NCBI GenBank assembly: GCA_001600695.1
Contig: BCKQ01000004.1
Span: 1,506,422 to 1,520,040, forward strand
Source of the DNA: Ascoidea asiatica JCM 7603
Lineage: Eukaryota; Fungi; Ascomycota
Direction of reading: 5' to 3'
Length of the DNA stretch: 13,619 nt
This document shows, in pieces, positions 1 through 13,619 of the stretch; the first letter of the stretch is position 1, and every line of letters begins with the position of its first letter. The position numbers were made by a program, and so were the translations under genes. The notes below the pieces were generated by a model. It saw nothing but the letters and a program-made list of their open reading frames with translations, had not been told where the DNA came from and ran no database searches.

Positions 1-1753
1 AACATGTCGATATATCACAGCTTAATAGTAATGCTAAGGCTATTGTTGCTTTTTCGGGGTAAAAAAAGACCTAAAACTCAGGTTTCTAAAACAGTTAACC
101 ATAAACAACGCTCAACTAATGATGGCTCTCTTAGTTCTAATAAAATTAAGAGTAACAAGAAAAAAACATAAAAAGATCGTAAACCATATTGTCTTATTTG
201 TCCAGCCGAACATCCATTTGGTTAAGACTTAAACAACAGTAACCCAGAATCGTCAGGGTCAGATAATCATAAGAAAATCGCAAATAGCAATACTTGCATT
301 ACTGTATACAAACCTAATGGAAATATTGCTCAAACTAAATAAGCAACTACCCCATTTACTGAGGGAAACAACTGTGTTTATTCACTCAAATTGTAGTACT
401 ACTTCTCATGGTATTGGCTGGGCTGCAGGGGATAATATGTCATATACTACCAGTGATAGAAATTTACTTAAAAGCTTTACAACACCCCATCTATTAATTA
501 ACGATATTCTTGACCCTGCAGAGTAAACAAAAGAAACAGCTACCATGACTATAAGGTTTCCTCATACTTCTTCACTAAAAATTTAAAAATGCTCATTCAA
601 CTTGCCAGAAACGTAATGAGTTTTGATGCTTTTCATGAGGGACCCTTTCAATTACTGAATGTTAAATCTTCATGAAATAACTCATCATACGTTGTATGGA
701 AATGGACTTCTTGCTAGGAGTACATAGAAATCGTTAAACAAAATGCATCAAATAAAGTTGCTTATCATATTAACAATTCTCAGCCATATTAACTTATTCA
801 AAAATTGAAGAACTTTACAACAGCATCAACGGTTGTGTATGATTCATATCGTATACCGCAAAATCGAAATGCAATTTTTGAGATAATACCTCTCAAACTT
901 CCTAATCTTTATGAAATATTATTAGGTGTTCCACAACCTAAAATACTTAAAATACATTAGTGATTGGGTGATCCCTCTGATTCTGACATGCTTAACGTAG
1001 AAAGATGAAAAATTCGAAATTGACGTACGTTACAGCGGAAACTTAATTAATGTGAAACATAATTCGCATACTACAGCTTTGCCAAACAACTTAAACAGTC
1101 GGAAAAACCCAAGCTGCACATTTAGATATCATGGAAAAAATATGGGAAATACAAGGATATTTTGTTTGAAGATTACAGTATCTTCCCAGCCGCATTTACT
1201 AGTAATGACAAAGCTTCTGTGAGCCCTGAAATAAATAAAGTTATTTCAAAAGGTGGCAATGAAAGATATTTACCTGAACCTGAGTTAACATTGATAATCT
1301 AACCGAGTGCAAAAATCTAAGTCCAGTACAATTATTGGACTACCACACGGATATGAATCTTTTCTTCATTGTAGATCGGAATTAGGTATTAGAAAAGTTA
1401 AATATATGAGCTCCAGAATTTTATTTCATCAAACTTCTCTTTATCATGAACATTTCTTTAGGAAGGCTACAGTATAGACTCGTCTTTTATTAACCAGCGA
1501 AATTCATTCCACAACTAATGAAATTAGTTTATTTGTATTTGATGAGAGACAGCAAAATATGCTCACCTCTCCTCTATTTGGATCAGATCTTTTGAACGCA
1601 TTTAATACAAATAGTTGGGAAAATGCCATATGTCTTGGAGATAATCAGTACTCGCGAACTTATAACGTTTTTAACGCAACAACAACTTTTTTGCTCGGTT
1701 TAATTGCAACCGTTAAATATGTTGGGGAACCTGATTTTTTTAAAATTTATTGA
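1..1753 (+). mobile_element. Degenerate Ty1/copia gag-pol fragment A (Gag knuckle, protease, integrase); pseudogenised and truncated by the window start
   Basis: Manual translation gives motifs in copia order. Knuckle YCLICPAEHPFG* (187-228). Eroded protease GWAAGDNMSYTTSDRNLL (~416-470) and QLARNVMSF (598-624). H**LGDPS for HxRLGHPS (955-978). Integrase core HLDIM (1119), ILFEDYS (1159), IDNLTE (1290). C-terminal GKGY/SH3-like LFGSD...AICLGDNQYSRTYNVF in ORF 1559-1753. Many stops and frameshifts. Confidence 0.85.
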
Positions 1754-1830
1754 CTATTACCCCCTCTAAGTTAGACATTATAAAATTTGTATTTGACTAA
1801 ACAGTTTGAGATTTACTATACTTTTGAATT

Positions 1831-2030
1831 GAAACTAAATATTAACATATACTATAATATCTATTCACTGTAATTAACTATTAACTTATTAATATATATT
1901 ATATAGATATTTTTCTTAATTTTGCTTCTTATTTCTTTATATATGCTTCTTAATAAATATATGCTCTTTTTCATCTTTTTTATACCAATTTTACCACATA
2001 GATAAAAGTAATATTTGAAAAATAAATTCG
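1831..2030. other. AT-rich non-coding tract
   Basis: Hand count: 34 G+C in 200 bp (~83% AT); 1871-1920 is ~92% AT. Contains a small degenerate ~20-bp repeat (TGCTTCTTA at 1923 and 1944, TGCTC at 1962). No ORF and no convincing TE motif. Confidence 0.85.
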
Positions 2031-2120
2031 AAATCTGTAAATTTTTGTCAATTACACGAAAACATTAACTGTGTCACACGAACACACTTTCGCCATTTCA
2101 GGTGCGTTGACAAATTAGGT

Positions 2121-2409
2121 ATTATTAAGATGTTTCTACTTTTTTACAACGATGCGGAATTTTCTTCATGTATAATAAGAACCTTCTAATTATTACAAAG
2201 TTCTTGGAGTAATTTGAGATTATTAAGAACGTTGTAATCGTTTTACAAAGTTGCGGAATATTGTTCTCTTTTAGTAAGAACTTTGTAAATAATACAAAGT
2301 TCTCAGAATAAGTAACAAGTTTCTGAGAACTTTTACATTTTTACAAAAATACAGAATACCATGCGGGATTTCATAAAAACTTTGTAATTATTACAAAGTT
2401 CTGCGAAAT
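2121..2409. repeat. Array of six palindromic units (consensus AAGAACTTTGTAAT-n-ATTACAAAGTTCT), ~49.5-bp period, 99-bp dimer x3
   Basis: Dyad centres at ~2141, 2191, 2240, 2290, 2339, 2389. Unit 2277-2303 has perfect 11-bp arms (AGAACTTTGTA/TACAAAGTTCT). Unit 2378-2400 has perfect 11-bp arms. Unit 2177-2205 matches 12/14 and unit 2228-2252 matches 9/10. TGCGGAAT occurs at 2153 and 2252, 99 bp apart. Confidence 0.9.
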
Positions 2410-4250
2410 TATCATTTTGCATTTGGAAGTTTGCCAGAAGATATCGAGTAGTATTACTCCTGATGCCGGGTTAATGTCAAATTTCGTATCCGAATTGGTA
2501 ATGCGGACAAACGAGTCAGACTATTAGTAGCTCATCTAGGTTCTACACACGGAGCAGCAGGTTTTTGGTAACTATTAGCAAAAAACTTGGGATTATATTT
2601 TAATTCCAAAATGAATATCACTTTATGAACAACGTGCATAATCTAAAAAATTGCTAACATCGTTTTATGAATTATTGAAACACCTACGCATCCCGAGCGT
2701 ACAATCCCACATATCAAACACTCGTTTCTGAACCGACTACAACTGAAGCAAAAGTTTACTTAAATAATACTCATTCAGAACATAAAATTCGTCCACCAGC
2801 ACATTCATATTTGGAAATTAACTTATCTGCTGATCCGATTATTCTTAAAACTTTTGCAAGCTCAACCGAATTTCATTCTAGGCAAAGGGCTCTTTATAGT
2901 GAAAAAAGTCATTTCCCAATTTGATCTGTTTGAGGGCACCGTCTGTTTACCAAAGAATACAACTTTATTTGAGGAAGCATGGATACTTAATAGTAAAATT
3001 TTTAAAATCCCGTTAAATGTTAAGGATAAACTACGAGTTTTTTATATCGTCAGTTTCAAAAGCTAGAAGTTCCAAAACTATCAAAATTTCGATTTAGTAC
3101 CCTTCATTTGGATAAGGATAATTTTTAAATTCCTCTTCTGTATTCTGCTCGTTGCAAGCTTAAAATTAAAACACTCCATATATCAACAGTATTTCAGCTT
3201 GTTCGAATACTTGCGGACAATTATTTTCTTTCAACGCAAAAACTTTTATGATGATGTTGAGACAAAATATGTAAAATTAAATAAATCTGCTTTGGGTCTA
3301 TGACACTCCTCTTTGTCATTGTTCCTTCATTCGAAGAACATTTTACTTAAGTTTGGTCTACTCACCTACTCTTAGACGGCTGTTGTTTGAACTCATCAAC
3401 TGGTTTACTAGTCGAGAACCAAGTGCATTAAGGTAAAATTTTACCAATGAATTTTTAAGTCATTTCACTAGTTATGGGCAAATTGAAAGGGAAGGTATCA
3501 ATTAAAGAACCAGCTTTAGAACATTTGGTCTTATTAGCTTTCCCTTCACCACACGGTGAGATTTGTATCACTTCGGATTGCATTACCACCAATATGTTAA
3601 GAAAGTTATCATTTGTTTATTCCACCCCTACATAATCCCCTCATTTAAATCGAGATGTGTCAAAAACTAACTTAATAATAAAGATAAAAATATTTGTCAA
3701 ACAAATTGTTGTTTCATTATTTTATTTAGCGACTCCTAATAGTGTTTATATTGCTGGTCCGCCGTTGAACTAGGGAAAAGTATTTCCTAGGGCCCAATAG
3801 ATTATTGAAGACCTCTCGGCATCGTTTTGATACCCTAAAGGGTGAACCAACTATCGGTACAAGTTTGAGTAGACCAATCGCAAAGAAATTTGTCTTTTCA
3901 CTGATTGTTCGTATTCCAAACACAGTGCCGCCCGATAGGTTTTTACAAACAGTGGTTGGGCAGTATCTTCGAAATCTTCGAGTGTTGGCCTCTAGCATTC
4001 GCTATTATGGTATCAAGTTTACATCATTGGAGCAACATTAAGTGAACAAGTTGATATTTATTTAATGATTTTAATAGAATACATTGCTAGCAAAATCGGA
4101 GCCTATTCAGTTTATCATACCCTTATTGATATTGCTAAACTAATGTAGAAAATCAAAAATCTTGAAGAGATGGGTCTTCTTTTAGGAAAGCAACTTAAAA
4201 TTAGGTCACATACTTGTATGAAACTACAACGATTAAATTATTAACCCTTT
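2410..4250 (+). mobile_element. Degenerate Ty1/copia pol fragment B (integrase C-terminus, reverse transcriptase, RNase H)
   Basis: YHFAFGSLPEDIE*YYS*CRVNVK...DKR...LGSTHGAAGF (2410-2570; FGCxxYV...LGY-type domain). KIRPPAHSY (~2784). RT motifs EAWIL...KDKLRV, TLHISTVF for LDISTAF (3171), KYVKLNKSALGL (3265-3300), ILLKFGL, and QVH* at the YVDD position (3420). RNase H FTDCSY (~3897) and TNSGWAV. Confidence 0.85.
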
Positions 4251-4261
4251 CCCTTATACCT

Positions 4262-5040
4262 TGTAAAGCTTATCGTGCACAAATACCCCAAATCTGATTC
4301 CCAGGGGATCGACGTTGTGAGAATCTTACAATAGTTGATTATTAGAACCTTAAAAATTTTTTTTATCCAGTCCTCGAACATACTATATATTTTAGAGGCT
4401 CTCATACAACTACGGCTGCACTGCTGGTACTCGATTGGGAAGATTACAGTTGTGATTCATGTTGGTGGACGCTCAGAGACTCATGTGCTTGAGGTGAAAA
4501 TTTGTCACTCCTGGAAAACTTTTGACTTGTTTCAATTCATATAACGACAAAGATACCTATTCTAAAAAACTCTCTTGAAGCAGAAAATGGGGAAAAGAAA
4601 AACTTTTATGTAAGGTGATGTCTAATAACCACTCAATGTAAGTTGTTCGACAGCTATCTAAAGATAGTATGATCCATATCAATCTAAATGCAATTATAAT
4701 TTTAAGAATCAGGGTTTTGAAAAGGTGCTGTTGGTACATCATCCACATAGCACTGCTATCGACAATCCTACTCTTATCCATAGACGAAGAGACGGTATAA
4801 CATATTTCGTCACATATTCGATATTCAGCAGACTGTCTGTAACTATACTCCAAAATCCGCATTACCTGTTAGAATCAACAAAAAAAAAAATCCAATGTAG
4901 AATCTCAAAGCACATGTTTGTTTATATAGTCATCTCCATGGCTTATGCACAAGCAATGCTTCAATCAGAAAGTTATGTGCTATTAAATATATAAATATCA
5001 TATCTATTATCCACTCAACAATGAAATTCATGAACTAATG
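4262..5040 (+). mobile_element. Degenerate Ty1/copia integrase fragment C
   Basis: H...SHTTTAAL...CDSC (4451-4462) zinc-binding region; ENF*LVSIHI for FELVHID; IDNPT; QQTVCNYTPKS...RINK (4830-4885); KAHVCLYSHLHGLC...AIKYINII...HST. Heavily eroded. Confidence 0.7.
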
Positions 5041-5067: not shown

Positions 5068-5870
5068 TCTTCTACTAATAATTCACCGTCTGCTGGTACT
5101 GAAACTTCTGTTTTATCTGCTCTAGATGCTTCATTATTCGGCAGTGCAATAGCATCCTCCACTGCCCTTATATAAAGCTCTTCCTCAGCTGCGATAGAAC
5201 CTCATCCTGTTGTTTTACCCTACTTTTGGTTAGCTACCCTCAGAATAACCCCAACTGCTAATACAGCAGCAGTCAGCAGAAATTCACCTTCCAGTTTTTA
5301 AACAGCCACAAGTTTAATATTCGCTATTGAAGCGAAAATAACCTCGCCTGCTTGCACCCAGTTGCCCTTTAATTGTACCTGGTTAAGATATTTACAGTGT
5401 TCTCATTACACTTACAAAACACATAATGACCCTGTACGCTTATTTATTACCACTACCTCGCCGAATTCGGTTTGGGTAATTTGGGCGTCTGCTGCATTCC
5501 TTCGAAAAGTTAGTATGTCTAGAATTTCTATCCGAACAGCTAGTAAGAATCACCACACGCTTGTCCAGCTAGGTGCTTTTGGTATTCCAGATGAGTTCCT
5601 GCAGGTTTATTTTATCTAATGTATGCTAATTTACTATAGGTAATCAATTGTTAGCATTTATCCTCTATAATATGCGCTATTCATTGACCTCACATAATTA
5701 TTCTATTTCTCTTACTAAATTTCTTCATCTCCGGTTATTGCTATACATCATTTACTTCTATTGTTAATTATCCTATTGCTTCCGTTCAACAATGCCCGTA
5801 CCACTGACTATACATGTTATGTAGTTGTTATTGTCGCTGTGAGAAACTTTATATGGATTTGGCCCGTTGA
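5068..5870 (+). pseudogene. Probable degenerate gag relic (Ser/Thr/Ala-rich N-terminus)
   Basis: One frame runs ~184 codons (5068-5619) with only two internal stops (SSTNNSPSAGTETS...FGIPDEFLQ). A possible eroded knuckle (CRCEKL / YGFG) lies near 5832-5866. No decisive motif; the call rests on context and composition. Confidence 0.4.
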
Positions 5871-6469: not shown

Positions 6470-9290
6470 TTGCAACTACACCTAAACATAGCAACAATAC
6501 ATCAATTAAGGAAACCTGTCAGCAACTATCATTGCCATTCTAGGTTACATTTCTGACTAGCGTTTTACATCGAATAATGACACTCTTTTAATTGAGTGAA
6601 CTTCTAATGATGGCTCTGCTGCTGTTGTGGGAATTCTCAAACATATGAAATCTATAGGTGATGAATTATATACTGTTGGCGTTCCAGCAGTTCCTGATGA
6701 AAGTTTTACACAATCCATAAACTTTTTTATCGTGATGAGCATAATCAGGTTCAAACAACCATGATCACGAGATTATTTTCAAACAAATCACCTTCAGGTA
6801 TTTTTCACACATTTGGATAAGAAGGTCAATAAAGGGTTACATGCGAGTATATACTATTTTCTCTATATTCCCGATCACAGTTGCTCAACAACCTATTCGA
6901 CCTTAAAGCTTCTTCAAAGACTGAATATTGATAGCAACAGTATTGAATCTGCTATCAAAAGAATCAATAATGGGTCATTTACGTCCAAAACCATCCTACA
7001 AAGGTTAAGGAGGTATAATTTCATTCAATCCAATATATATCTAATTTTGTTGGTAAGGAAACCGTTCGTTATAGAATTATTATTGTTCGGATGAACCTTG
7101 GACATGAATTCTCATTCTTTCCAAATTTATCAGTGCTTTTAAAAAACCCTTTAATTAAAATGCTTTCAACTAACATGGTAGTGTTGTTCAATCAATTTAT
7201 GTGTATTATTTTTAAGCACAATTTCAGCCATCTACCAGTACATACTACTTTTTGTAAGGGATCTTATAATGATACATCGTTCAATAATTATTCTTTGGAA
7301 TATAAATTTCCCGAAGAACAAACCATTTATGAAAGTATTGCCAACACAGATGGCACACAGATGGCACACAGATGGCTCAATGGCAATGCATCTGCCCATA
7401 AAATCAAAGTAACAGAATTTAGTTGTTGTAAGCTGTCCTCTCGCCCTCATAAGTTTGGTAAACATATTACACCACTGAAGCCTCATGTAACCTTAAAAAC
7501 CAAATCATTAATTGATAGGTTTTATAAACACTTATAACAACAGCAGATGAATACATGATCACAACTCACTTAGCAGCTCATATTTTGTTTCAGATCGAGA
7601 ATTTAATTTTTCAGCTGAGTTGTAAACTCGTCAACTCTTCCTACAATCTACTTTCTATAGAAGACCAATCTTATCCCTAGCATGTATTATTAACTATTTT
7701 ACTAACATTGTACTGTTGCTTAAAAATGGAATTTCATATTCTATTGGAACACTTTTAAAAGGTCCTTATAAAACTGATCACATTTATGTCAGACTTCCTC
7801 AGTATTTATTTGCAATGGAGTGTTTTCAATAAAACATCAAACTATCCGGCGAACGATGCATATCTAGCACATTTCAGCCCTCGCACATCCAAGTATTTCA
7901 AGTATGAGGCACTTGGTCAATTTCATATCAAAACTTTCGGAAGCTTTAATTAAGTCATGTATAATATGTAAAGTTACAAAATTGTCGTTCAGATGCCTTG
8001 CAAACAAGGATGTATCGTGGTCCTCACATGAGTTACAATTAGTACCTACAGATACAACTGCCGCTCACACAACAGAAACCGGTGCCAAACATATTATACT
8101 ATTGAATCGGATGACTTTACCTGATATGGTGATGTTACCCTGTTATGTCAAAATATCAAACTGGGAAACAAGTGCAACAACCAAGATATAAAAGTGAAAC
8201 ATTAAAAGGGTCTAAAGTTCTTAAGTTTAAATCTGATTATGGGTCTGTGTTTACCAAATTCCACAGTACATTCAAATTTCTTTCTTCTCCAAGATATAGC
8301 CCAAGCGATAATAGTCGTGCTGAAACAACAGGTGGAAAAATTGAAACGATTTCTTTTTGATTCTGTGTTCACCTTGAAGAATTTCTTGTGAACATTTTTT
8401 TAGATCTTATAAAAAATTAGCTGATACTTATGTAGACGTTTGGTATAACAAATGTACCAACTCAAGTCCTATGCAAAACCTTTCCTGAGGAGCTCCTATT
8501 TCTCGGAAATTTCTACCTTTTGGTAAAGACTGTTGGATCTGGAATCGTCTTAAGAAAATAGTACCTCAGGGATACTTTGTTGAGTATGACAATGATTCTC
8601 TCACGTTTAAGTTTTTCAATAGGAACAATTATGTCATTATAATAAGCGGAGATCTTAAAAAGCTTGATACTTTCCACTTTATTACCACTCATGTACAAAA
8701 TATTCTTCTAGCTGTGGAACCTACTGCTGATAGTTTTATTTTTTACCAACAGAATGGTCTACCGATTCTTTTGGAACTGCCGCAAAACCCCTTTCTACCT
8801 CGTCCTCTTTTAAATTCGAGAGATACTCATAACTATACTATTTGATTACTATAGCTTCTAATGCTAGAGAACTTCATGGATTTGTTTCCAGTTCTCCACC
8901 GAAATCTTTTATAATTGTCTGCCATCATCCAGAATGTCCTACCGCTTTATCAAAAAAATGCAATATACTTAGCATTAATAGTTCCATGTCTCCTATGATC
9001 CTCATTCCCTAAGAAGAGTACGCCTTAAGGCTAAATTGGGTTTTTACTTTAGACAATGTTGTGGACCCTGAAGCTAGATTAGTTATCGTTGGAAAACGAG
9101 AACAAAAAACGCCAGCAGAAGTCGCTGTTCCTGGCTGTCATTCAACAACAGAAAACGTAGTACTCATTATTGAAGCCAAAATACACCTTCACGTATAGAA
9201 ACTTGAAATAAAATCAGCCTTTGTCACAACCAACAAATATAGGGATATTCATATTTACACCCCCCCTGGCTTAGTGCCATAGTTGATGGT
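6470..9290 (+). mobile_element. Degenerate Ty1/copia element D (gag, protease, integrase, 5' part of RT); 5' boundary approximate
   Basis: Knuckle CKLSSRPHKFGKH (7427-7465). Protease relic YMI...FVSDREF (~7552-7605). Integrase: LAHPS...SCIICKVTK...LQLVPTDT (running into ORF 7904-8191), DDFT*Y (~8110), KVLKFKSDYGSVF...YSPSDNSRAE (ORF 8145-8360), FLPFGKDCW...GYFVEY (8510-8587). RT: PPKSF (~8895), NWVFT, EARLVIVG, LEIKSAF, IYTPPGL (to ~9273). Confidence 0.92.
7344..7376 (+). repeat. Perfect tandem repeat (ACACAGATGGC)x3
   Basis: Three identical 11-bp copies at 7344, 7355 and 7366, inside the gag of element D. Confidence 0.97.
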
Positions 9291-9291
9291 T

Positions 9292-9507
9292 TGTGATACT
9301 ATATTCAGACTCATTCGATACATACCACGTGACTGCCGGTTGCGTTCAACCGGCTCCGAGGAGACTCACACCCGTGCGAAGCCAACTGCGGCTTGCCACC
9401 GAGAAAATTTTGATTCTCTCAGTCAAACATAAAAGAACTTCAGTTGTCCTTCTCTTTTATATTTTATATAGAGTTGTTTCCATGATCTCTTTTGATCAAC
9501 CATGTAA
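9292..9507 (+). mobile_element. Probable Ty5-like 5' LTR (ends uncertain)
   Basis: Starts with TG (TGTGATAC) just where RT homology of element D stops. GC-richer than the flanks. Has a TATA-like CATAAAAG (9428-9435) followed by a pyrimidine tract, ATCAACCA near the 3' end, and is immediately followed by a half-tRNA PBS-like motif. No clean terminal CA or target-site duplication found. Confidence 0.6.
9326..9333 (-). promoter_or_regulatory. Perfect CDEI / Cbf1 E-box (GTCACGTG on - strand)
   Basis: CACGTGAC on the + strand matches RTCACRTG. It is the only CACGTG I could find in the window. Confidence 0.65.
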
Positions 9508-9520
9508 GGTTATGATCCTG
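9508..9520 (+). promoter_or_regulatory. Degenerate Ty5/copia-type primer-binding site (half initiator-Met tRNA)
   Basis: GGTTATGA-TCCTG versus GGTTATGAGCCCTG, the complement of the yeast tRNAiMet anticodon stem-loop used by Ty5; one gap and one mismatch. Confidence 0.6.
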
Positions 9521-9779
9521 TTGGTGCTTCAACGACAGGTGAACCCGGGTATCCTGAATGGTATTTGAAATTAGCCTGCTTACTTTGTTTATCACTGTAA
9601 ATATTCTAAAAAACTGGCTAATGCAAATTTAAGTAATAATTGGGAAATGGATGGTGATTTCGAGTAAAATCTAGTTGTTTGTTCTGTTTATCGTTTCAAA
9701 TAGTATAGTAGATTTTATTTGCATTTTAAAATGGTTAAAAAAGTTTATCTATTTGAATATTTGTATTTCAAAATTCTTC

Positions 9780-10840
9780 AATTTCATTTGAAATTACCGT
9801 TTATTAATTTTACAATAATAAAGACAAGCTATCAATAGTACTCCTGAAATTTAAATTTAATTCAATCAATACTTTATAAAATATTAAATTTATTTCACAT
9901 CCATTTAATGAAATTAAAACCTAGTCAGACTAAAAATGGTAATTACATTGGTGATTAATTGAAAATTAATTTAAATTGTTGAATTGAATATTTGATTTCT
10001 ACATATGTTTATATTATTGGGGATCAACTGAGACACATTTTCAAATGATTAAATTAAGGATTACGCTTGACTCAATGGTAATACTAACCGAGTTGAATAA
10101 AAACATTAATAAAACGGCTTTTTGCTTAAACATCACCTAAGATGTCAACAATTGTTTTGAATTGGGTAAGTACAATAAATCATGTCAGAATGTAATTCTA
10201 CTTTCATTATGTTATCAATTCTTTATTATTCACTTTTAAAGTTTGTAAAATTTTAAATTTTGTTAGACCCATAGGACTGCTAATTAGTGTTTAATGTAGG
10301 AGGACTTTGTTGCTGATTTTTACAATACTCGAGGACTATTCACCAAGTCGCAAGTGGAAACTTTTTACTATATGGTTTGAATAATTAAAATTGTGTTTTA
10401 TGAAGATCTATATAAGATTGGGATATGAATATTTAAATAAAAGGATGTTTCTATGTGTGGGTAGCCAAGTTTCGAAAGAAAAGAAAAGTGCTACGGTTAA
10501 GTTCTTATCTTTTTCACTGGTCGAGTCAAAGATTATGTGTGTAATTCCCGATCACATTCCCTGACATATACTGGTGTGTCCTCTTTATTATTAATCTGCT
10601 AATTGATCAATTCTTTGTTATTCTTCATTAGAACTAACTATTGTTTCATCATTTAAATTACAAAATATATGAAATAGAAGATATAATGGTTTTGTGTATC
10701 TTTTTTGGTCACTTTTTGTTAAAATAAAACAAAAGTGGTAATCCCGGTGTGCATAACCAATAATTCCAGGTAGTTATTTTATGAAATTTTTTGACTCTTG
10801 TGAAACACGCTTTCCCACTATTAACGATTTTGGAATATTT
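9780..10840 (+). mobile_element. Very heavily eroded copia RT-RNase H relic, possibly the continuation of element D
   Basis: Faint motifs in the right order with roughly correct spacing: VLLKFKF (~9838), YIGD at the YVDD position (9944-9955), LLGIN (~10014), LTQW*Y (10067), VRPI for TRPD (~10262), YED...DW (~10400), GSQVS...SLVES (~10460-10530), QVVIL for QxADIL (~10767). Each motif is weak on its own. Confidence 0.5.
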
Positions 10841-11056
10841 TTCAAATCCAACTACACTTACTCTATCTGACTAGTTCATTAATAATTCATTCACAATTCC
10901 CTTTTACTTCATCCATCTAATTTTATTGTGTCACATAAAATTTTCAAAGTTATAATTCAATTAATCGTTCGAATTCCCAACGAATTGTCTTTCGTATATT
11001 CAATTACAAAATCTTTCTTAATTTTCTTAATTCCCTAATTTTTATTCTTCAAATAG

Positions 11057-13619
11057 TTGTTTATCATGCTTAGTCCTCATTATCTCATTGAATCCTCTTA
11101 TGATTCACTTTCACATGCAAATGCTTCTTCAACCTTTGTTCCTCAAACTGTGATTAACTATAATCAAGCTCCTTTAGATCTTCTTAATTTTATTGAAACC
11201 ACAATAATTGCAACTGATACTTCTGATTTTCAACCTCAAGATGCCAATTCTGATATCAGTGTTATGTTTAAAAAGATTACTCATTCTGGTGGTAAAATTT
11301 CAAATGATGTATTTTGTGTTTATAAAACAAAGTTCGTAACGATTTCTCATCAGAATCAGGTCTACCTTATTGGGGTAGAAGTCATATTTCTTTATCTAAT
11401 TGGAAGTTTTATTTTGATACTTTTTCAACTATTGTTTGTGAATGGCTAACCGGTACTGTCGTCAAAAATATTTATATTCTAGAAGATATTCAAATTTCTC
11501 CTAAAAGCATTTTTAATTATGTTTCAACTCTTCAATCGTATGGTCCTACTATTGAACAAGCGATTGGTAGAATGAATGCTACAACTGAATATTCAAGTGA
11601 TGCTTTTGCAGATATTCCTCTTGTACTTCAACATAAAGAAGATGAGTTCACACAATTTTTAAATACTGAATTAGATGCTTTGAGATCTCTTTATACTATT
11701 ACTAGACTTAATTTTGAAGTTCAAAAATGTCCTCAATCTGCTATATCTTTAAGACAGCCTTTGCTTAAACATCTTCACTCTTACACGAAAATTAGTTTTT
11801 CAGAAGTAAGAGAAATTATTGTCAAAGCTAATTTAACTCATTTAAATTATCTTGAAAACATTCAGCAAAAACTTTTCAATTTCGTCGCAAATGTGGTTAT
11901 TCTTTTGATAGTACTGTCAAAGCTAATGATACTTCTTCCTCTAAAGATGAATTTTCTGTTGGTAAGAAATTGAAAGGTAACTCTAATGAGAAAACTTATT
12001 GCAAAAAGCTTCAACATACATCATCTATGCGGAGCACATATTGATGGTAATGAGGATACTCCTGGTAAAGATGCTTCTTCTTCTGGGGTGTCTTCTCAAT
12101 AACTATCGTCCGTTGCTGTCATAGAGTCAGGTGATTCTCATAGATTTGTAACTACAGATTTAGAATAACTTTTATTCAATTTCAGACGTTCAACTATTTT
12201 ACTTAAGATCGCTAATGGATCTCAAACTGCTACTACTGTTGCTGGTTATATTTCAATTAAAATAAAAGATACTGATACTTTTTATACTATTCCTGCTGTT
12301 GTTGTTCCTTCAATTCATATGATTATTATTTTTATTAAACCAGTCTGTAAGATCTATAACATCTCTGTTTCCTTTGATGGTGATGAAGTTTTTATAAGAG
12401 ATAAACTTAATGATTATCCAGTTGGTAAATTTTCTTTGCCTACATATTGTTATCAAACAACTTCTATTGTTATAGCTTTGATCATCCTCCAGATATAATA
12501 TTAACCATTTATAATGTTACTATTAGTAATGCTACTCATTTACTTGAATAACATTATATAAATGGACATCCATCTTTTTCTACTATGGGAAGTATGGGAT
12601 AAAAAATAAGTATTGATGATGAAAGAAAGATAAAACAATGTCATAATTGTTCTAAAACCTAGATGAAACAATCAAGTCATACAAGTACCGTTGGAAATTG
12701 CTCGAGAAGGTTATTTCAAACTGGTCATTTGGATACTATTGGTGCTTATACCCTAAGTAATAAAACTAGAGAGTTGTATGCACTCATGATGGATGATTAT
12801 TCTAGATACGTATCTACTTTTAACTAGTCAATAAAGCACGAATTGCAAAGACAGTTCCAGATACAATCATCTTTTGGAAGAAACTTACTGGACTTAAACA
12901 TGGTGTTATCAAGAAACAGAATGGATTTAATTCAATAAACCTTACATTGGTTATAAGCTTCCTGATCCTGCTTATTGCCGTATTTTAATGCAAGAATTGA
13001 ACGGGGTGTTCAAAAGGTTAAAAGAATCGTTGATTCATTACGACATACTGTTGCAGATAATATAAACCTACTAGAATACTTCAAGCGTTATGCTTATGCA
13101 TAAGCTACTCAATTAAGCTATCGTTGTTATCATTCATCAACAAAACTGTTTCCACTCGATTTATTTTCAGGTAGAAAATCTTCTTTACTTAATAAATAAC
13201 CAAGATTTATCAAAGATAGTTACATATTTTATAAAACTCAAAAGGTTCTTGGATGTTTTATAGGTTACAATAACCTTCCAGCTACATATAAGTTCCTATT
13301 ACCTCTATATCCTATCCAGGAATGTCATTACCTTTGATCTTAATAGATGTAATGCAAATCATCTTTTAAATCAAATCAACTGTCGGTTACAACTACAGTT
13401 AATCAATCAAAAACCTTCATATCCAACCTATATTCCAATGTTTAACCGGCCTTGTCATATATTTTATCCAACTTTCGTTCTAGATGATACAACTCAAATA
13501 GAACCTACTGCAGGTATTGCTCCAAAGAAATATAAAGATGCTATCAGGAATCCTAATTAACGACTGGCCATTGATAGAGAAGTTCAAGCTTTAATTTATC
13601 GAAATGTCTTTGAAGAAGA
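11057..13619 (+). mobile_element. Degenerate Ty1/copia element E (gag, protease, integrase, start of RT); runs off the window end
   Basis: Gag-like ORF pieces 11057-11449 and 11572-11973; knuckle 12000-12039. Protease VIESGDSHRFVT for IDSGAS (12118-12153). Integrase HYINGHPS (12552), CHNC (12639), HLDTIG (12726), MDDYSRY (~12789), LNGVFKRL (~12997), GCFIGY (13251). RT start PKKYKDAIRNPN*RLAIDREVQAL (13522+). Confidence 0.93.

Follow-up and report, generated by a model that had tools for sequence, protein, structure and literature searches.

A phased palindrome array in a retrotransposon cluster of Ascoidea asiatica as the probable U3 repeat of a dead Ty1/copia-type LTR

The phased array of palindromes in the window, the whole stretch of 13,619 nucleotides of Ascoidea asiatica DNA that was analysed, is very probably the U3 repeat of a dead Ty1/copia LTR, the palindromes most likely being iterated sites for a dimeric host factor. 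As such, it is an ordinary transposon control region and no special chromosomal element. New is a previously undescribed LTR family whose U3 repeat is palindromic and unusually regular; U3 repeats themselves were already known.

Geometry of the palindrome array

The array consists of three direct repeats of 99 bp, in each of which a good palindrome is accompanied by a weaker one (Table 1). A repeat search of the window returned a 39-nt block three times at a spacing of exactly 99/99 bp (2171–2209, 2270–2308 and 2369–2407) and with 77–82% identity, and a 71-nt pair was also present at a distance of 99 bp. The strong dyads were described by the motif AGAACTTTGTAA-n3-TTACAAAGTTCT (12-n3-12, 27 nt), to which they showed one or two mismatches around a 3-nt centre in a motif scan; two of the three weaker dyads have a 5-nt centre. 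This second site type is located half-way between the strong sites, so that the dyad centres alternate at 49/50 bp, and a second-type site with a 5-nt centre and ..GATGC was found at the equivalent position in the related copies L030, L031, L032, L033 and L035. The first of the weaker palindromes was missed by the motif scan even at ≤7 mismatches and was seen only in the half-unit alignment, where both half-units of the 99-bp repeat keep a palindrome with the same core. Repeat search and motif scan thus confirmed the phased palindromes, the 99-bp spacing and the centre positions that had been described in a sequence-only reading of this DNA, and the motif TGCGG/TGCGA recurs at 2153, 2252, 2362 and 2402 as that reading had claimed.

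A chance origin of the 27-mer sites is excluded, since three were found in the window at ≤3 mismatches against 0.00 in 200 shuffles. The array was not reported by TRF at default scoring (score ≥30), because its units are only ~77% alike. It is no assembly artefact, as one 680-nt read contig spans 1884–2563 with zero differences and at the depth of the flanks; the reads came from runs of two samples, both of which may be the source strain.

Table 1. Coordinates of the array, the LTR and the adjoining sequences in the window.
Feature	Position	Strand	Remarks
Older copia-type element, left part	1150–1747	+	13 paralogs, 73–79% identity, running straight into the right flank
Left 5-bp target-site duplication, AAATT	1743–1747	.	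junction letters; empty-site paralogs
Solo LTR of an old Ty1/copia-type family, 900 bp	1748–2647	-	shared boundaries, inverted termini, C23 interior
TATA-like element, TATAAAAAAG	1975–1984	-	nt 664–673 of the LTR; alignment block of 9 copies
Three-unit 99-bp array	2121–2409	-	nt 239–527 of the 900-bp LTR; upstream of the TATA-like element
Weak second-type palindrome 1	~2127–2155	.	centre ~2141; strongly decayed; from half-unit alignment
Strong palindrome 1	2178–2204	.	centre 2191; 2 mismatches
Second-type palindrome 2	2226–2254	.	centre ~2240; 3 mismatches; 5-nt centre; outer right arm ..GTTGC
Strong palindrome 2	2277–2303	.	centre 2290; 1 mismatch
Weak palindrome 3	2326–2352	.	centre ~2339; 7 mismatches
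Strong palindrome 3	2376–2402	.	centre 2389; 1 mismatch
Right 5-bp target-site duplication, AAATT	2648–2652	.	junction letters; empty-site paralogs
Older copia-type element, right part leading into RT	2653–3250	+	10 paralogs, 66–73% identity

Genome-wide copies and identification of the LTR

The genome to which the window belongs (20.3 Mb) was searched with the 289-bp array. At least ten other places were matched (E 3e-78 to 4e-11), on C16 (two copies, 18 kb apart), C39, C4 (a second copy, 30 kb away), C14, C34, C23 (two), C17 and C3. Upon comparison of the 10-kb stretches around each copy, the similarity always spanned window positions 1746–1748 to 2640–2643, which defines a unit of ~900 bp, and the copies were 57–89% identical to one another. 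Fourteen of the 18 distinct genomic palindrome sites (≤3 mismatches) fall inside copies of this unit.

In the orientation of the window, the unit begins with TATTGATTATTACC and finishes with ..ATAATCAACA in most copies, decayed here to ATAATCTAAA. The sense strand starts with TGTTGATTAT and ends with ..GGTAATAATCAATA; its ends form an inverted repeat, TGTTGATTAT...ATAATCAATA, matching at 9/10 positions, with TA and not CA as the last dinucleotide. The 5' end is TGTTG, and all copies have ..CAATA as the 3' terminus instead of the canonical ..CAACA. Perfect 5-bp target duplications were found here (AAATT) and on C17 (TAAGC), and the duplication around the C23 element agrees at four of five positions (CATTA/AATTA). 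Based on the shared ends, the inverted termini, these duplications and the empty sites and gag-pol interior described below, the unit in the window is a solo LTR of a Ty1/copia-type retrotransposon.

The sequence-only reading had proposed that a genome search would distinguish a centromeric array, present once per chromosome, from a mobile element with many dispersed copies. The search gave the second outcome, including the shared ends and target-site duplications. The suggestion in that reading of an internal repeat of a mobile element was essentially right; the element is the LTR of a Ty1/copia retrotransposon and not a MITE or Helitron. Dispersed ~0.9-kb copies with shared ends and short target duplications do resemble such elements, but a gag-pol interior lies between two of the copies, the ends are TG...A with a 5-bp duplication, and long terminal inverted repeats are lacking. 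Helitron features (5'-TC, CTRR-3' and a 3' hairpin) were not seen in the ends of the copies that were read.

The best-conserved part of the LTR, with a column identity of ~0.8, is a purine-rich ..TTAGAGGAGGGTAATAATCAATA at its 3' end (window 1755–1775, minus strand). Because it lies inside the LTR at the 3' terminus, it is U5/integrase-end sequence and not the polypurine tract of a neighbouring element. A tRNA-Asn gene (L033:660–733) and a tRNA-Phe gene (L038:8882–8977) were located within 4–5 kb of the LTR copies C4:1478682 and C17:263048, respectively. This proximity may be due to chance, or some clusters may lie near tRNA genes; in the window itself, no tRNA genes were found.

The full-length element on C23

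A single full-length element of the LTR family was found, at C23:25708–31524, and it is heavily decayed. Its two LTRs are in direct orientation, 4.1 kb apart and 72.7% identical. Pfam matches in the interior are all on one strand and in the order gag_pre-integrs, rve, SH3_retrovirus and then RVT_2. The RVT_2 match is well supported (77.8 bits vs a cut-off of 31.6); the other three are weak and below threshold. The position of the integrase before the RT corresponds to the Ty1/copia order. The orientation of this interior shows that the minus strand of the window is the sense strand of the LTR.

The 5' LTR is directly followed by TGG, the remainder showing no clear match to initiator tRNA, and no initiator tRNA was found in the 24 genomic loci searched. 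The sole purine run, AAGGGAG, sits ~45 nt before the 3' LTR. At first look, no open frame of ≥70 aa was seen in the element, in which the longest stretch free of stops measures 204 aa. The family looks old and is apparently dead. With the Pol of L043, an intact copia element of the same genome, the RT piece shares only 28.7% identity. When this Pol was used in tblastn, no part of the window was matched at E 1e-3, and the match to the C23 element was confined to a 122-aa RT piece.

Elsewhere in the genome, RVT_2 matches at C2:1434440–1435150 and C6:902772–903479 were located inside stop-free frames of 1496 and 2716 codons. Accordingly, the genome seems to harbour at least one further copia family that is intact and possibly still active.

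Insertion site and neighbouring relics

The LTR in the window was inserted antisense in the pol region of another old copia element. Judged from their paralogs, the copia pieces on either side belong to one older copia-type element that was split by the insertion. The paralogs of the left and the right flank are contiguous in C32, C19, C4:1539579–1540772, C3 and C11; as measured by coordinates only, the left flank (to window 1743) and the right flank (from 2651) are 2 nt apart in these paralogs. Such a gap implies one segment with the length of AAATT between the flanks, and these loci thus represent empty sites. An RVT_2 match is present at the corresponding position just downstream in C32:65286–65711; on the basis of this paralog, the RT region of the split element should begin near window 2950.

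Over 2.2 kb, window 9275–11434 is 75.5% identical to L039:5468–7679 (C3:477667–479878), a stretch that adjoins a fragment of the same LTR family (window 2285–2530 matches L039:4794–5045). This may reflect either a shared nested arrangement or a segmental copy. Two weak, collinear Pfam matches on the plus strand (gag_pre-integrs at 7868–8188, E 0.002; SH3_retrovirus at 8489–8842, E 0.012) hint at another heavily decayed copia-type relic. In a Pfam search of ten open stretches of the window, none scored above the cut-off and nothing was found beside the LTR.

Position of the array in the LTR and inheritance of its phasing

On the sense strand, the TATA-like TATAAAAAAG follows the array at a distance of 137 bp. 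It is part of a conserved block that reads TATAAAAAAG(A)TGAAAAAG (window 1984 to 1975, minus strand) and it may be the TATA box of the element. Array and TATA-like element together would have the arrangement of an upstream activating region in U3.

All LTR copies share the 49.5/50/99-bp phasing and the alternation of the two site types. The number of units varies from 2 to 4, with three strong sites in most copies, four in C4:1478682 and two in others; in the C17 copy, a deletion has removed most of the array. Because the array recurs at this spacing throughout the LTR copies, the phasing is inherited from the ancestral LTR and no local constraint is needed to account for it. Within 290 bp, there is moreover little room for indels. 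Alignment to the interior of a known transposable element or satellite had been named as a refutation in the sequence-only reading, and the array does align to the interior of a transposable element.

These data bear on the proposal of a centromere or kinetochore cis-element, or of a partition- or origin-like platform, which the host would have kept in the retrotransposon cluster. In its favour, all copies are found in regions with few genes and many TEs, with RVT_2 matches nearby, close to the ends of contigs or on small ones. Ty5-type LTR clusters moreover serve as centromeres in many budding yeasts, among them Ascoideales, and LTR motifs are proposed to have been co-opted there as centromere elements (PMC13017519, PMC12711049). 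However, the array does not occur once per chromosome as the sequence-only reading would have had it for a centromere, origin or partition locus: with at least ten copies, two each were found on C4 (30 kb apart), C16 (18 kb) and C23. Every copy is part of an LTR, so the array moves with the LTR and its phasing is inherited, and the copies L038 and L034 have lost units or most of the array. Together with the changes after insertion and the genome-wide counts given below, this makes a role of the array in chromosome segregation or replication extremely improbable. The cluster as a whole is a reasonable centromere candidate, but nothing singles out the array.

Conservation of the arms and timing of selection

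Ten related LTR copies were aligned and compared column by column. In this alignment, for which the palindromes themselves may act as anchors, the mean pairwise column identity was 0.80 for the strong dyads, taken as 27-nt sites with their centres, as against 0.72 for the rest of the LTR (p = 0.005) and 0.66 for the spacers. Variants common to at least two copies, which are mostly differences between source lineages, occupied 15% of the columns in the arms, compared to 35% in the rest (p = 0.0013) and 42% in the spacers. Private changes, which mostly arose after insertion, were not significantly different between arms (6.5%) and rest (7.4%).

The C23 subfamily, which is 57–69% identical to the other copies, showed the same trend. 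Against the majority of the others, its strong arms were 86–91% identical, the rest 68–72% and the spacers 50–59% (p ≤ 0.002). Since the arms are conserved between subfamilies, yet private changes affect the arms and the remaining sequence at similar rates, selection is placed before insertion. This pattern is the signature of strong arms that were under selection during the active life of the element and were released afterwards. In the C23 LTR pair, the arms differ by 14% and the rest by 28%; this contrast, from a single pair, could reflect weak later constraint or conversion between the two LTRs. It speaks for a centromeric element, against which stand the equal frequencies of private changes in the ten copies.

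Of the sequence-only reading, the observation that dyads are kept while spacers diverge thus holds at the level of the family, across the LTR copies. The constraint that it deduced did act on the arms in the active lineage, but not at this locus, given the similar frequency of private changes in and outside the arms among the copies. Its binding platform for a dimeric protein is likewise plausible and fits the conservation pattern, the constraint having been on the lineage of the active element rather than on the locus.

These measures also weigh against the array being a functionless by-product, in which slippage or template switching duplicated a segment that included a palindrome by chance and the result was then inherited. 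Tandem duplications are common in LTRs, the number of units among copies ranges from 2 to 4, and the sites decay like the remaining LTR after insertion. Subfamilies with so low an overall identity would however not be expected to retain their strong arms and lose their spacers to the extent given above, nor would columns with shared variants be less than half as frequent in the arms. Both half-units have kept a palindrome with the same core, and a similar palindrome is present twice in unrelated sequence on C43 (see below). A by-product is therefore considered unlikely.

Palindromes with 12-bp arms, 3-nt loops and a regular spacing could also act as hairpins or cruciforms, for example as stem-loops in the RNA of U3 (3' UTR) for packaging, dimerisation or strand transfer. 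The U3 of the 3' LTR is transcribed, and the sense strand of the array folds at -60.7 kcal/mol vs -41.2 kcal/mol for shuffles (z = -4.7), but such a good fold follows trivially from the palindromes. A total of 26 strong-type palindromes in the ten copies, with 312 arm-pair cells, was examined. The two arms were unchanged in 224 cells; 83 showed a one-sided change, 64 of them pair-breaking, and only 2 were compensatory. With compensatory changes in only 2 of 312 cells, selection was on the sequence and not on the pairing, contrary to the earlier suggestion that symmetry itself is constrained, as in a cruciform. Beyond complementarity, the sequence of the half-site is the same across units and subfamilies, and the C43 palindromes retain only the outer 9 bp of each arm. 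A structural role is hence very unlikely, and the conserved half-site sequence favours a putative sequence-specific dimeric protein over a hairpin or cruciform.

Proposed function and candidate factor

In the preferred reading, in which the palindromes are host-factor sites, the array is a tandem repeat of three units that was already present in the U3 (promoter/enhancer) of the ancestral 900-bp LTR. A ~50-bp unit would have been duplicated, after which the resulting 99-bp unit was triplicated. The two related palindromes per 99-bp unit could then be iterated sites for a homodimeric host transcription factor, and this putative factor would drive transcription from the TATA-like element. It is probable that the palindromes were bound by a protein, that this protein was a dimer and that the array served as enhancer or UAS.

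The 12-nt half-site was not enriched genome-wide, with 24 occurrences vs 31 for the reversed control, and 15 of the 24 were located inside LTR copies. As it is unenriched outside the LTR copies, there is no independent sign of its use in host promoters. The same count speaks against a centromeric element and is in line with a by-product.

The arm contains WWCAAAG, which we take to be the core recognised by sequence-specific HMG-box proteins, and the centre of the palindrome is often TAATTA, presumably a homeodomain core. The outer AGAAC...GTTCT recalls steroid-receptor elements, which are irrelevant in yeast.

Two palindromes with the same core, AGRACTTTGCA-n-ACAAAGTTCT, were observed 151 bp apart at C43:9582–9608 and 9733–9759 (L040:4483–4509 and 4634–4660). 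Each is flanked by CTA..TAG, in sequence unrelated to the LTR, and only the outer 9 bp of each arm are kept. They directly follow the 371-bp LTR of a younger copia family and are repeated at L040:5407–5433 and 5558–5584, across a scaffold gap of 100 N, a duplication that may be an assembly artefact. A second array-bearing LTR family on C43 was considered and rejected: only the first 371 nt are dispersed, the part with the palindromes is local, and ~35 nt are shared with the LTR.

Comparison with known systems

Repeats in U3 are found in murine leukaemia virus, as 72/75-bp repeats, and in tobacco Tnt1. As in U3 enhancer repeats, the array consists of direct repeats in the 5' part of the LTR, upstream of a TATA-like element; the number of units is variable, motifs are conserved and spacers less so, and solo LTRs spread the repeats. 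Tandem repeats with transcription-factor sites in U3 are a described LTR feature, and human ERV9/LTR12 contains 5–17 E-element units of ~41 bp binding NF-Y and GATA factors (PMC11853044). In contrast to ERV9/LTR12, each 99-bp unit here holds two 27–29-bp palindromes of one motif family, and the role of a factor is putative. The control regions of Ty elements in budding yeasts are also different, in that they are generally portrayed as single sites rather than higher-order repeats.

Transcription-factor motifs are abundant in the Ty5 LTRs of yeasts (Haase et al. 2026, PMC13017519), and clusters of Ty5-like LTRs are found at the centromeres of budding yeasts (same study; Hession et al. 2025, PMC12711049). 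The present family is similar to these in its Ty1/copia-type LTR, the TGTTG 5' end, the 5-bp duplications and the state of its solo LTRs, which are decayed and lie nested in retrotransposon clusters with few genes, in an AT-rich yeast. It may belong to the Ty5 clade, although its 3' end has CAATA instead of CAACA and no clear PBS was seen; its palindrome is not among the motifs of the Ty5 study (Cbf1, Cep3 and Ume6/GCG; PMC13017519).

Tandem repeats derived from LTRs can seed centromeric satellites, such as CRM1TR and CRM4TR in maize (PMC3648361). Here too, the units derive from LTRs of elements living in centromere-type regions. Unlike those long arrays, which are amplified outside the element, the 2–4 units are in each case enclosed in an LTR that is otherwise complete, and the genome search revealed no locus where the array was amplified outside the LTRs.

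A combination of both roles was also considered, in which the palindrome is a host-factor site that also marks or organises the chromatin of retrotransposon clusters, as candidate centromeres, with LTR arrays as raw material for centromere motifs. A possible parallel is offered by the Ty5 LTR motifs proposed to have become CDEI, CDEIII and CAM elements. The sole hints for such marking are the C43 palindromes and the lower arm divergence between the two C23 LTRs, and this extension of the host-factor reading is judged exceedingly unlikely.

Significance

With these results, a false lead has been cleared: the phased array in a candidate centromeric region is the control region of a solo LTR, and the spacing that seemed to be maintained was inherited. 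An uncatalogued copia-type LTR family has been defined, together with its orientation and the anatomy of its insertion. The family is a clear illustration of regulatory sites under selection in the active element and of their neutral-looking decay thereafter. The 27-bp palindrome could help to identify the host factor by which the element was formerly driven, and such a factor would bear on the idea that factor sites carried by LTRs seeded the centromere elements of yeasts.
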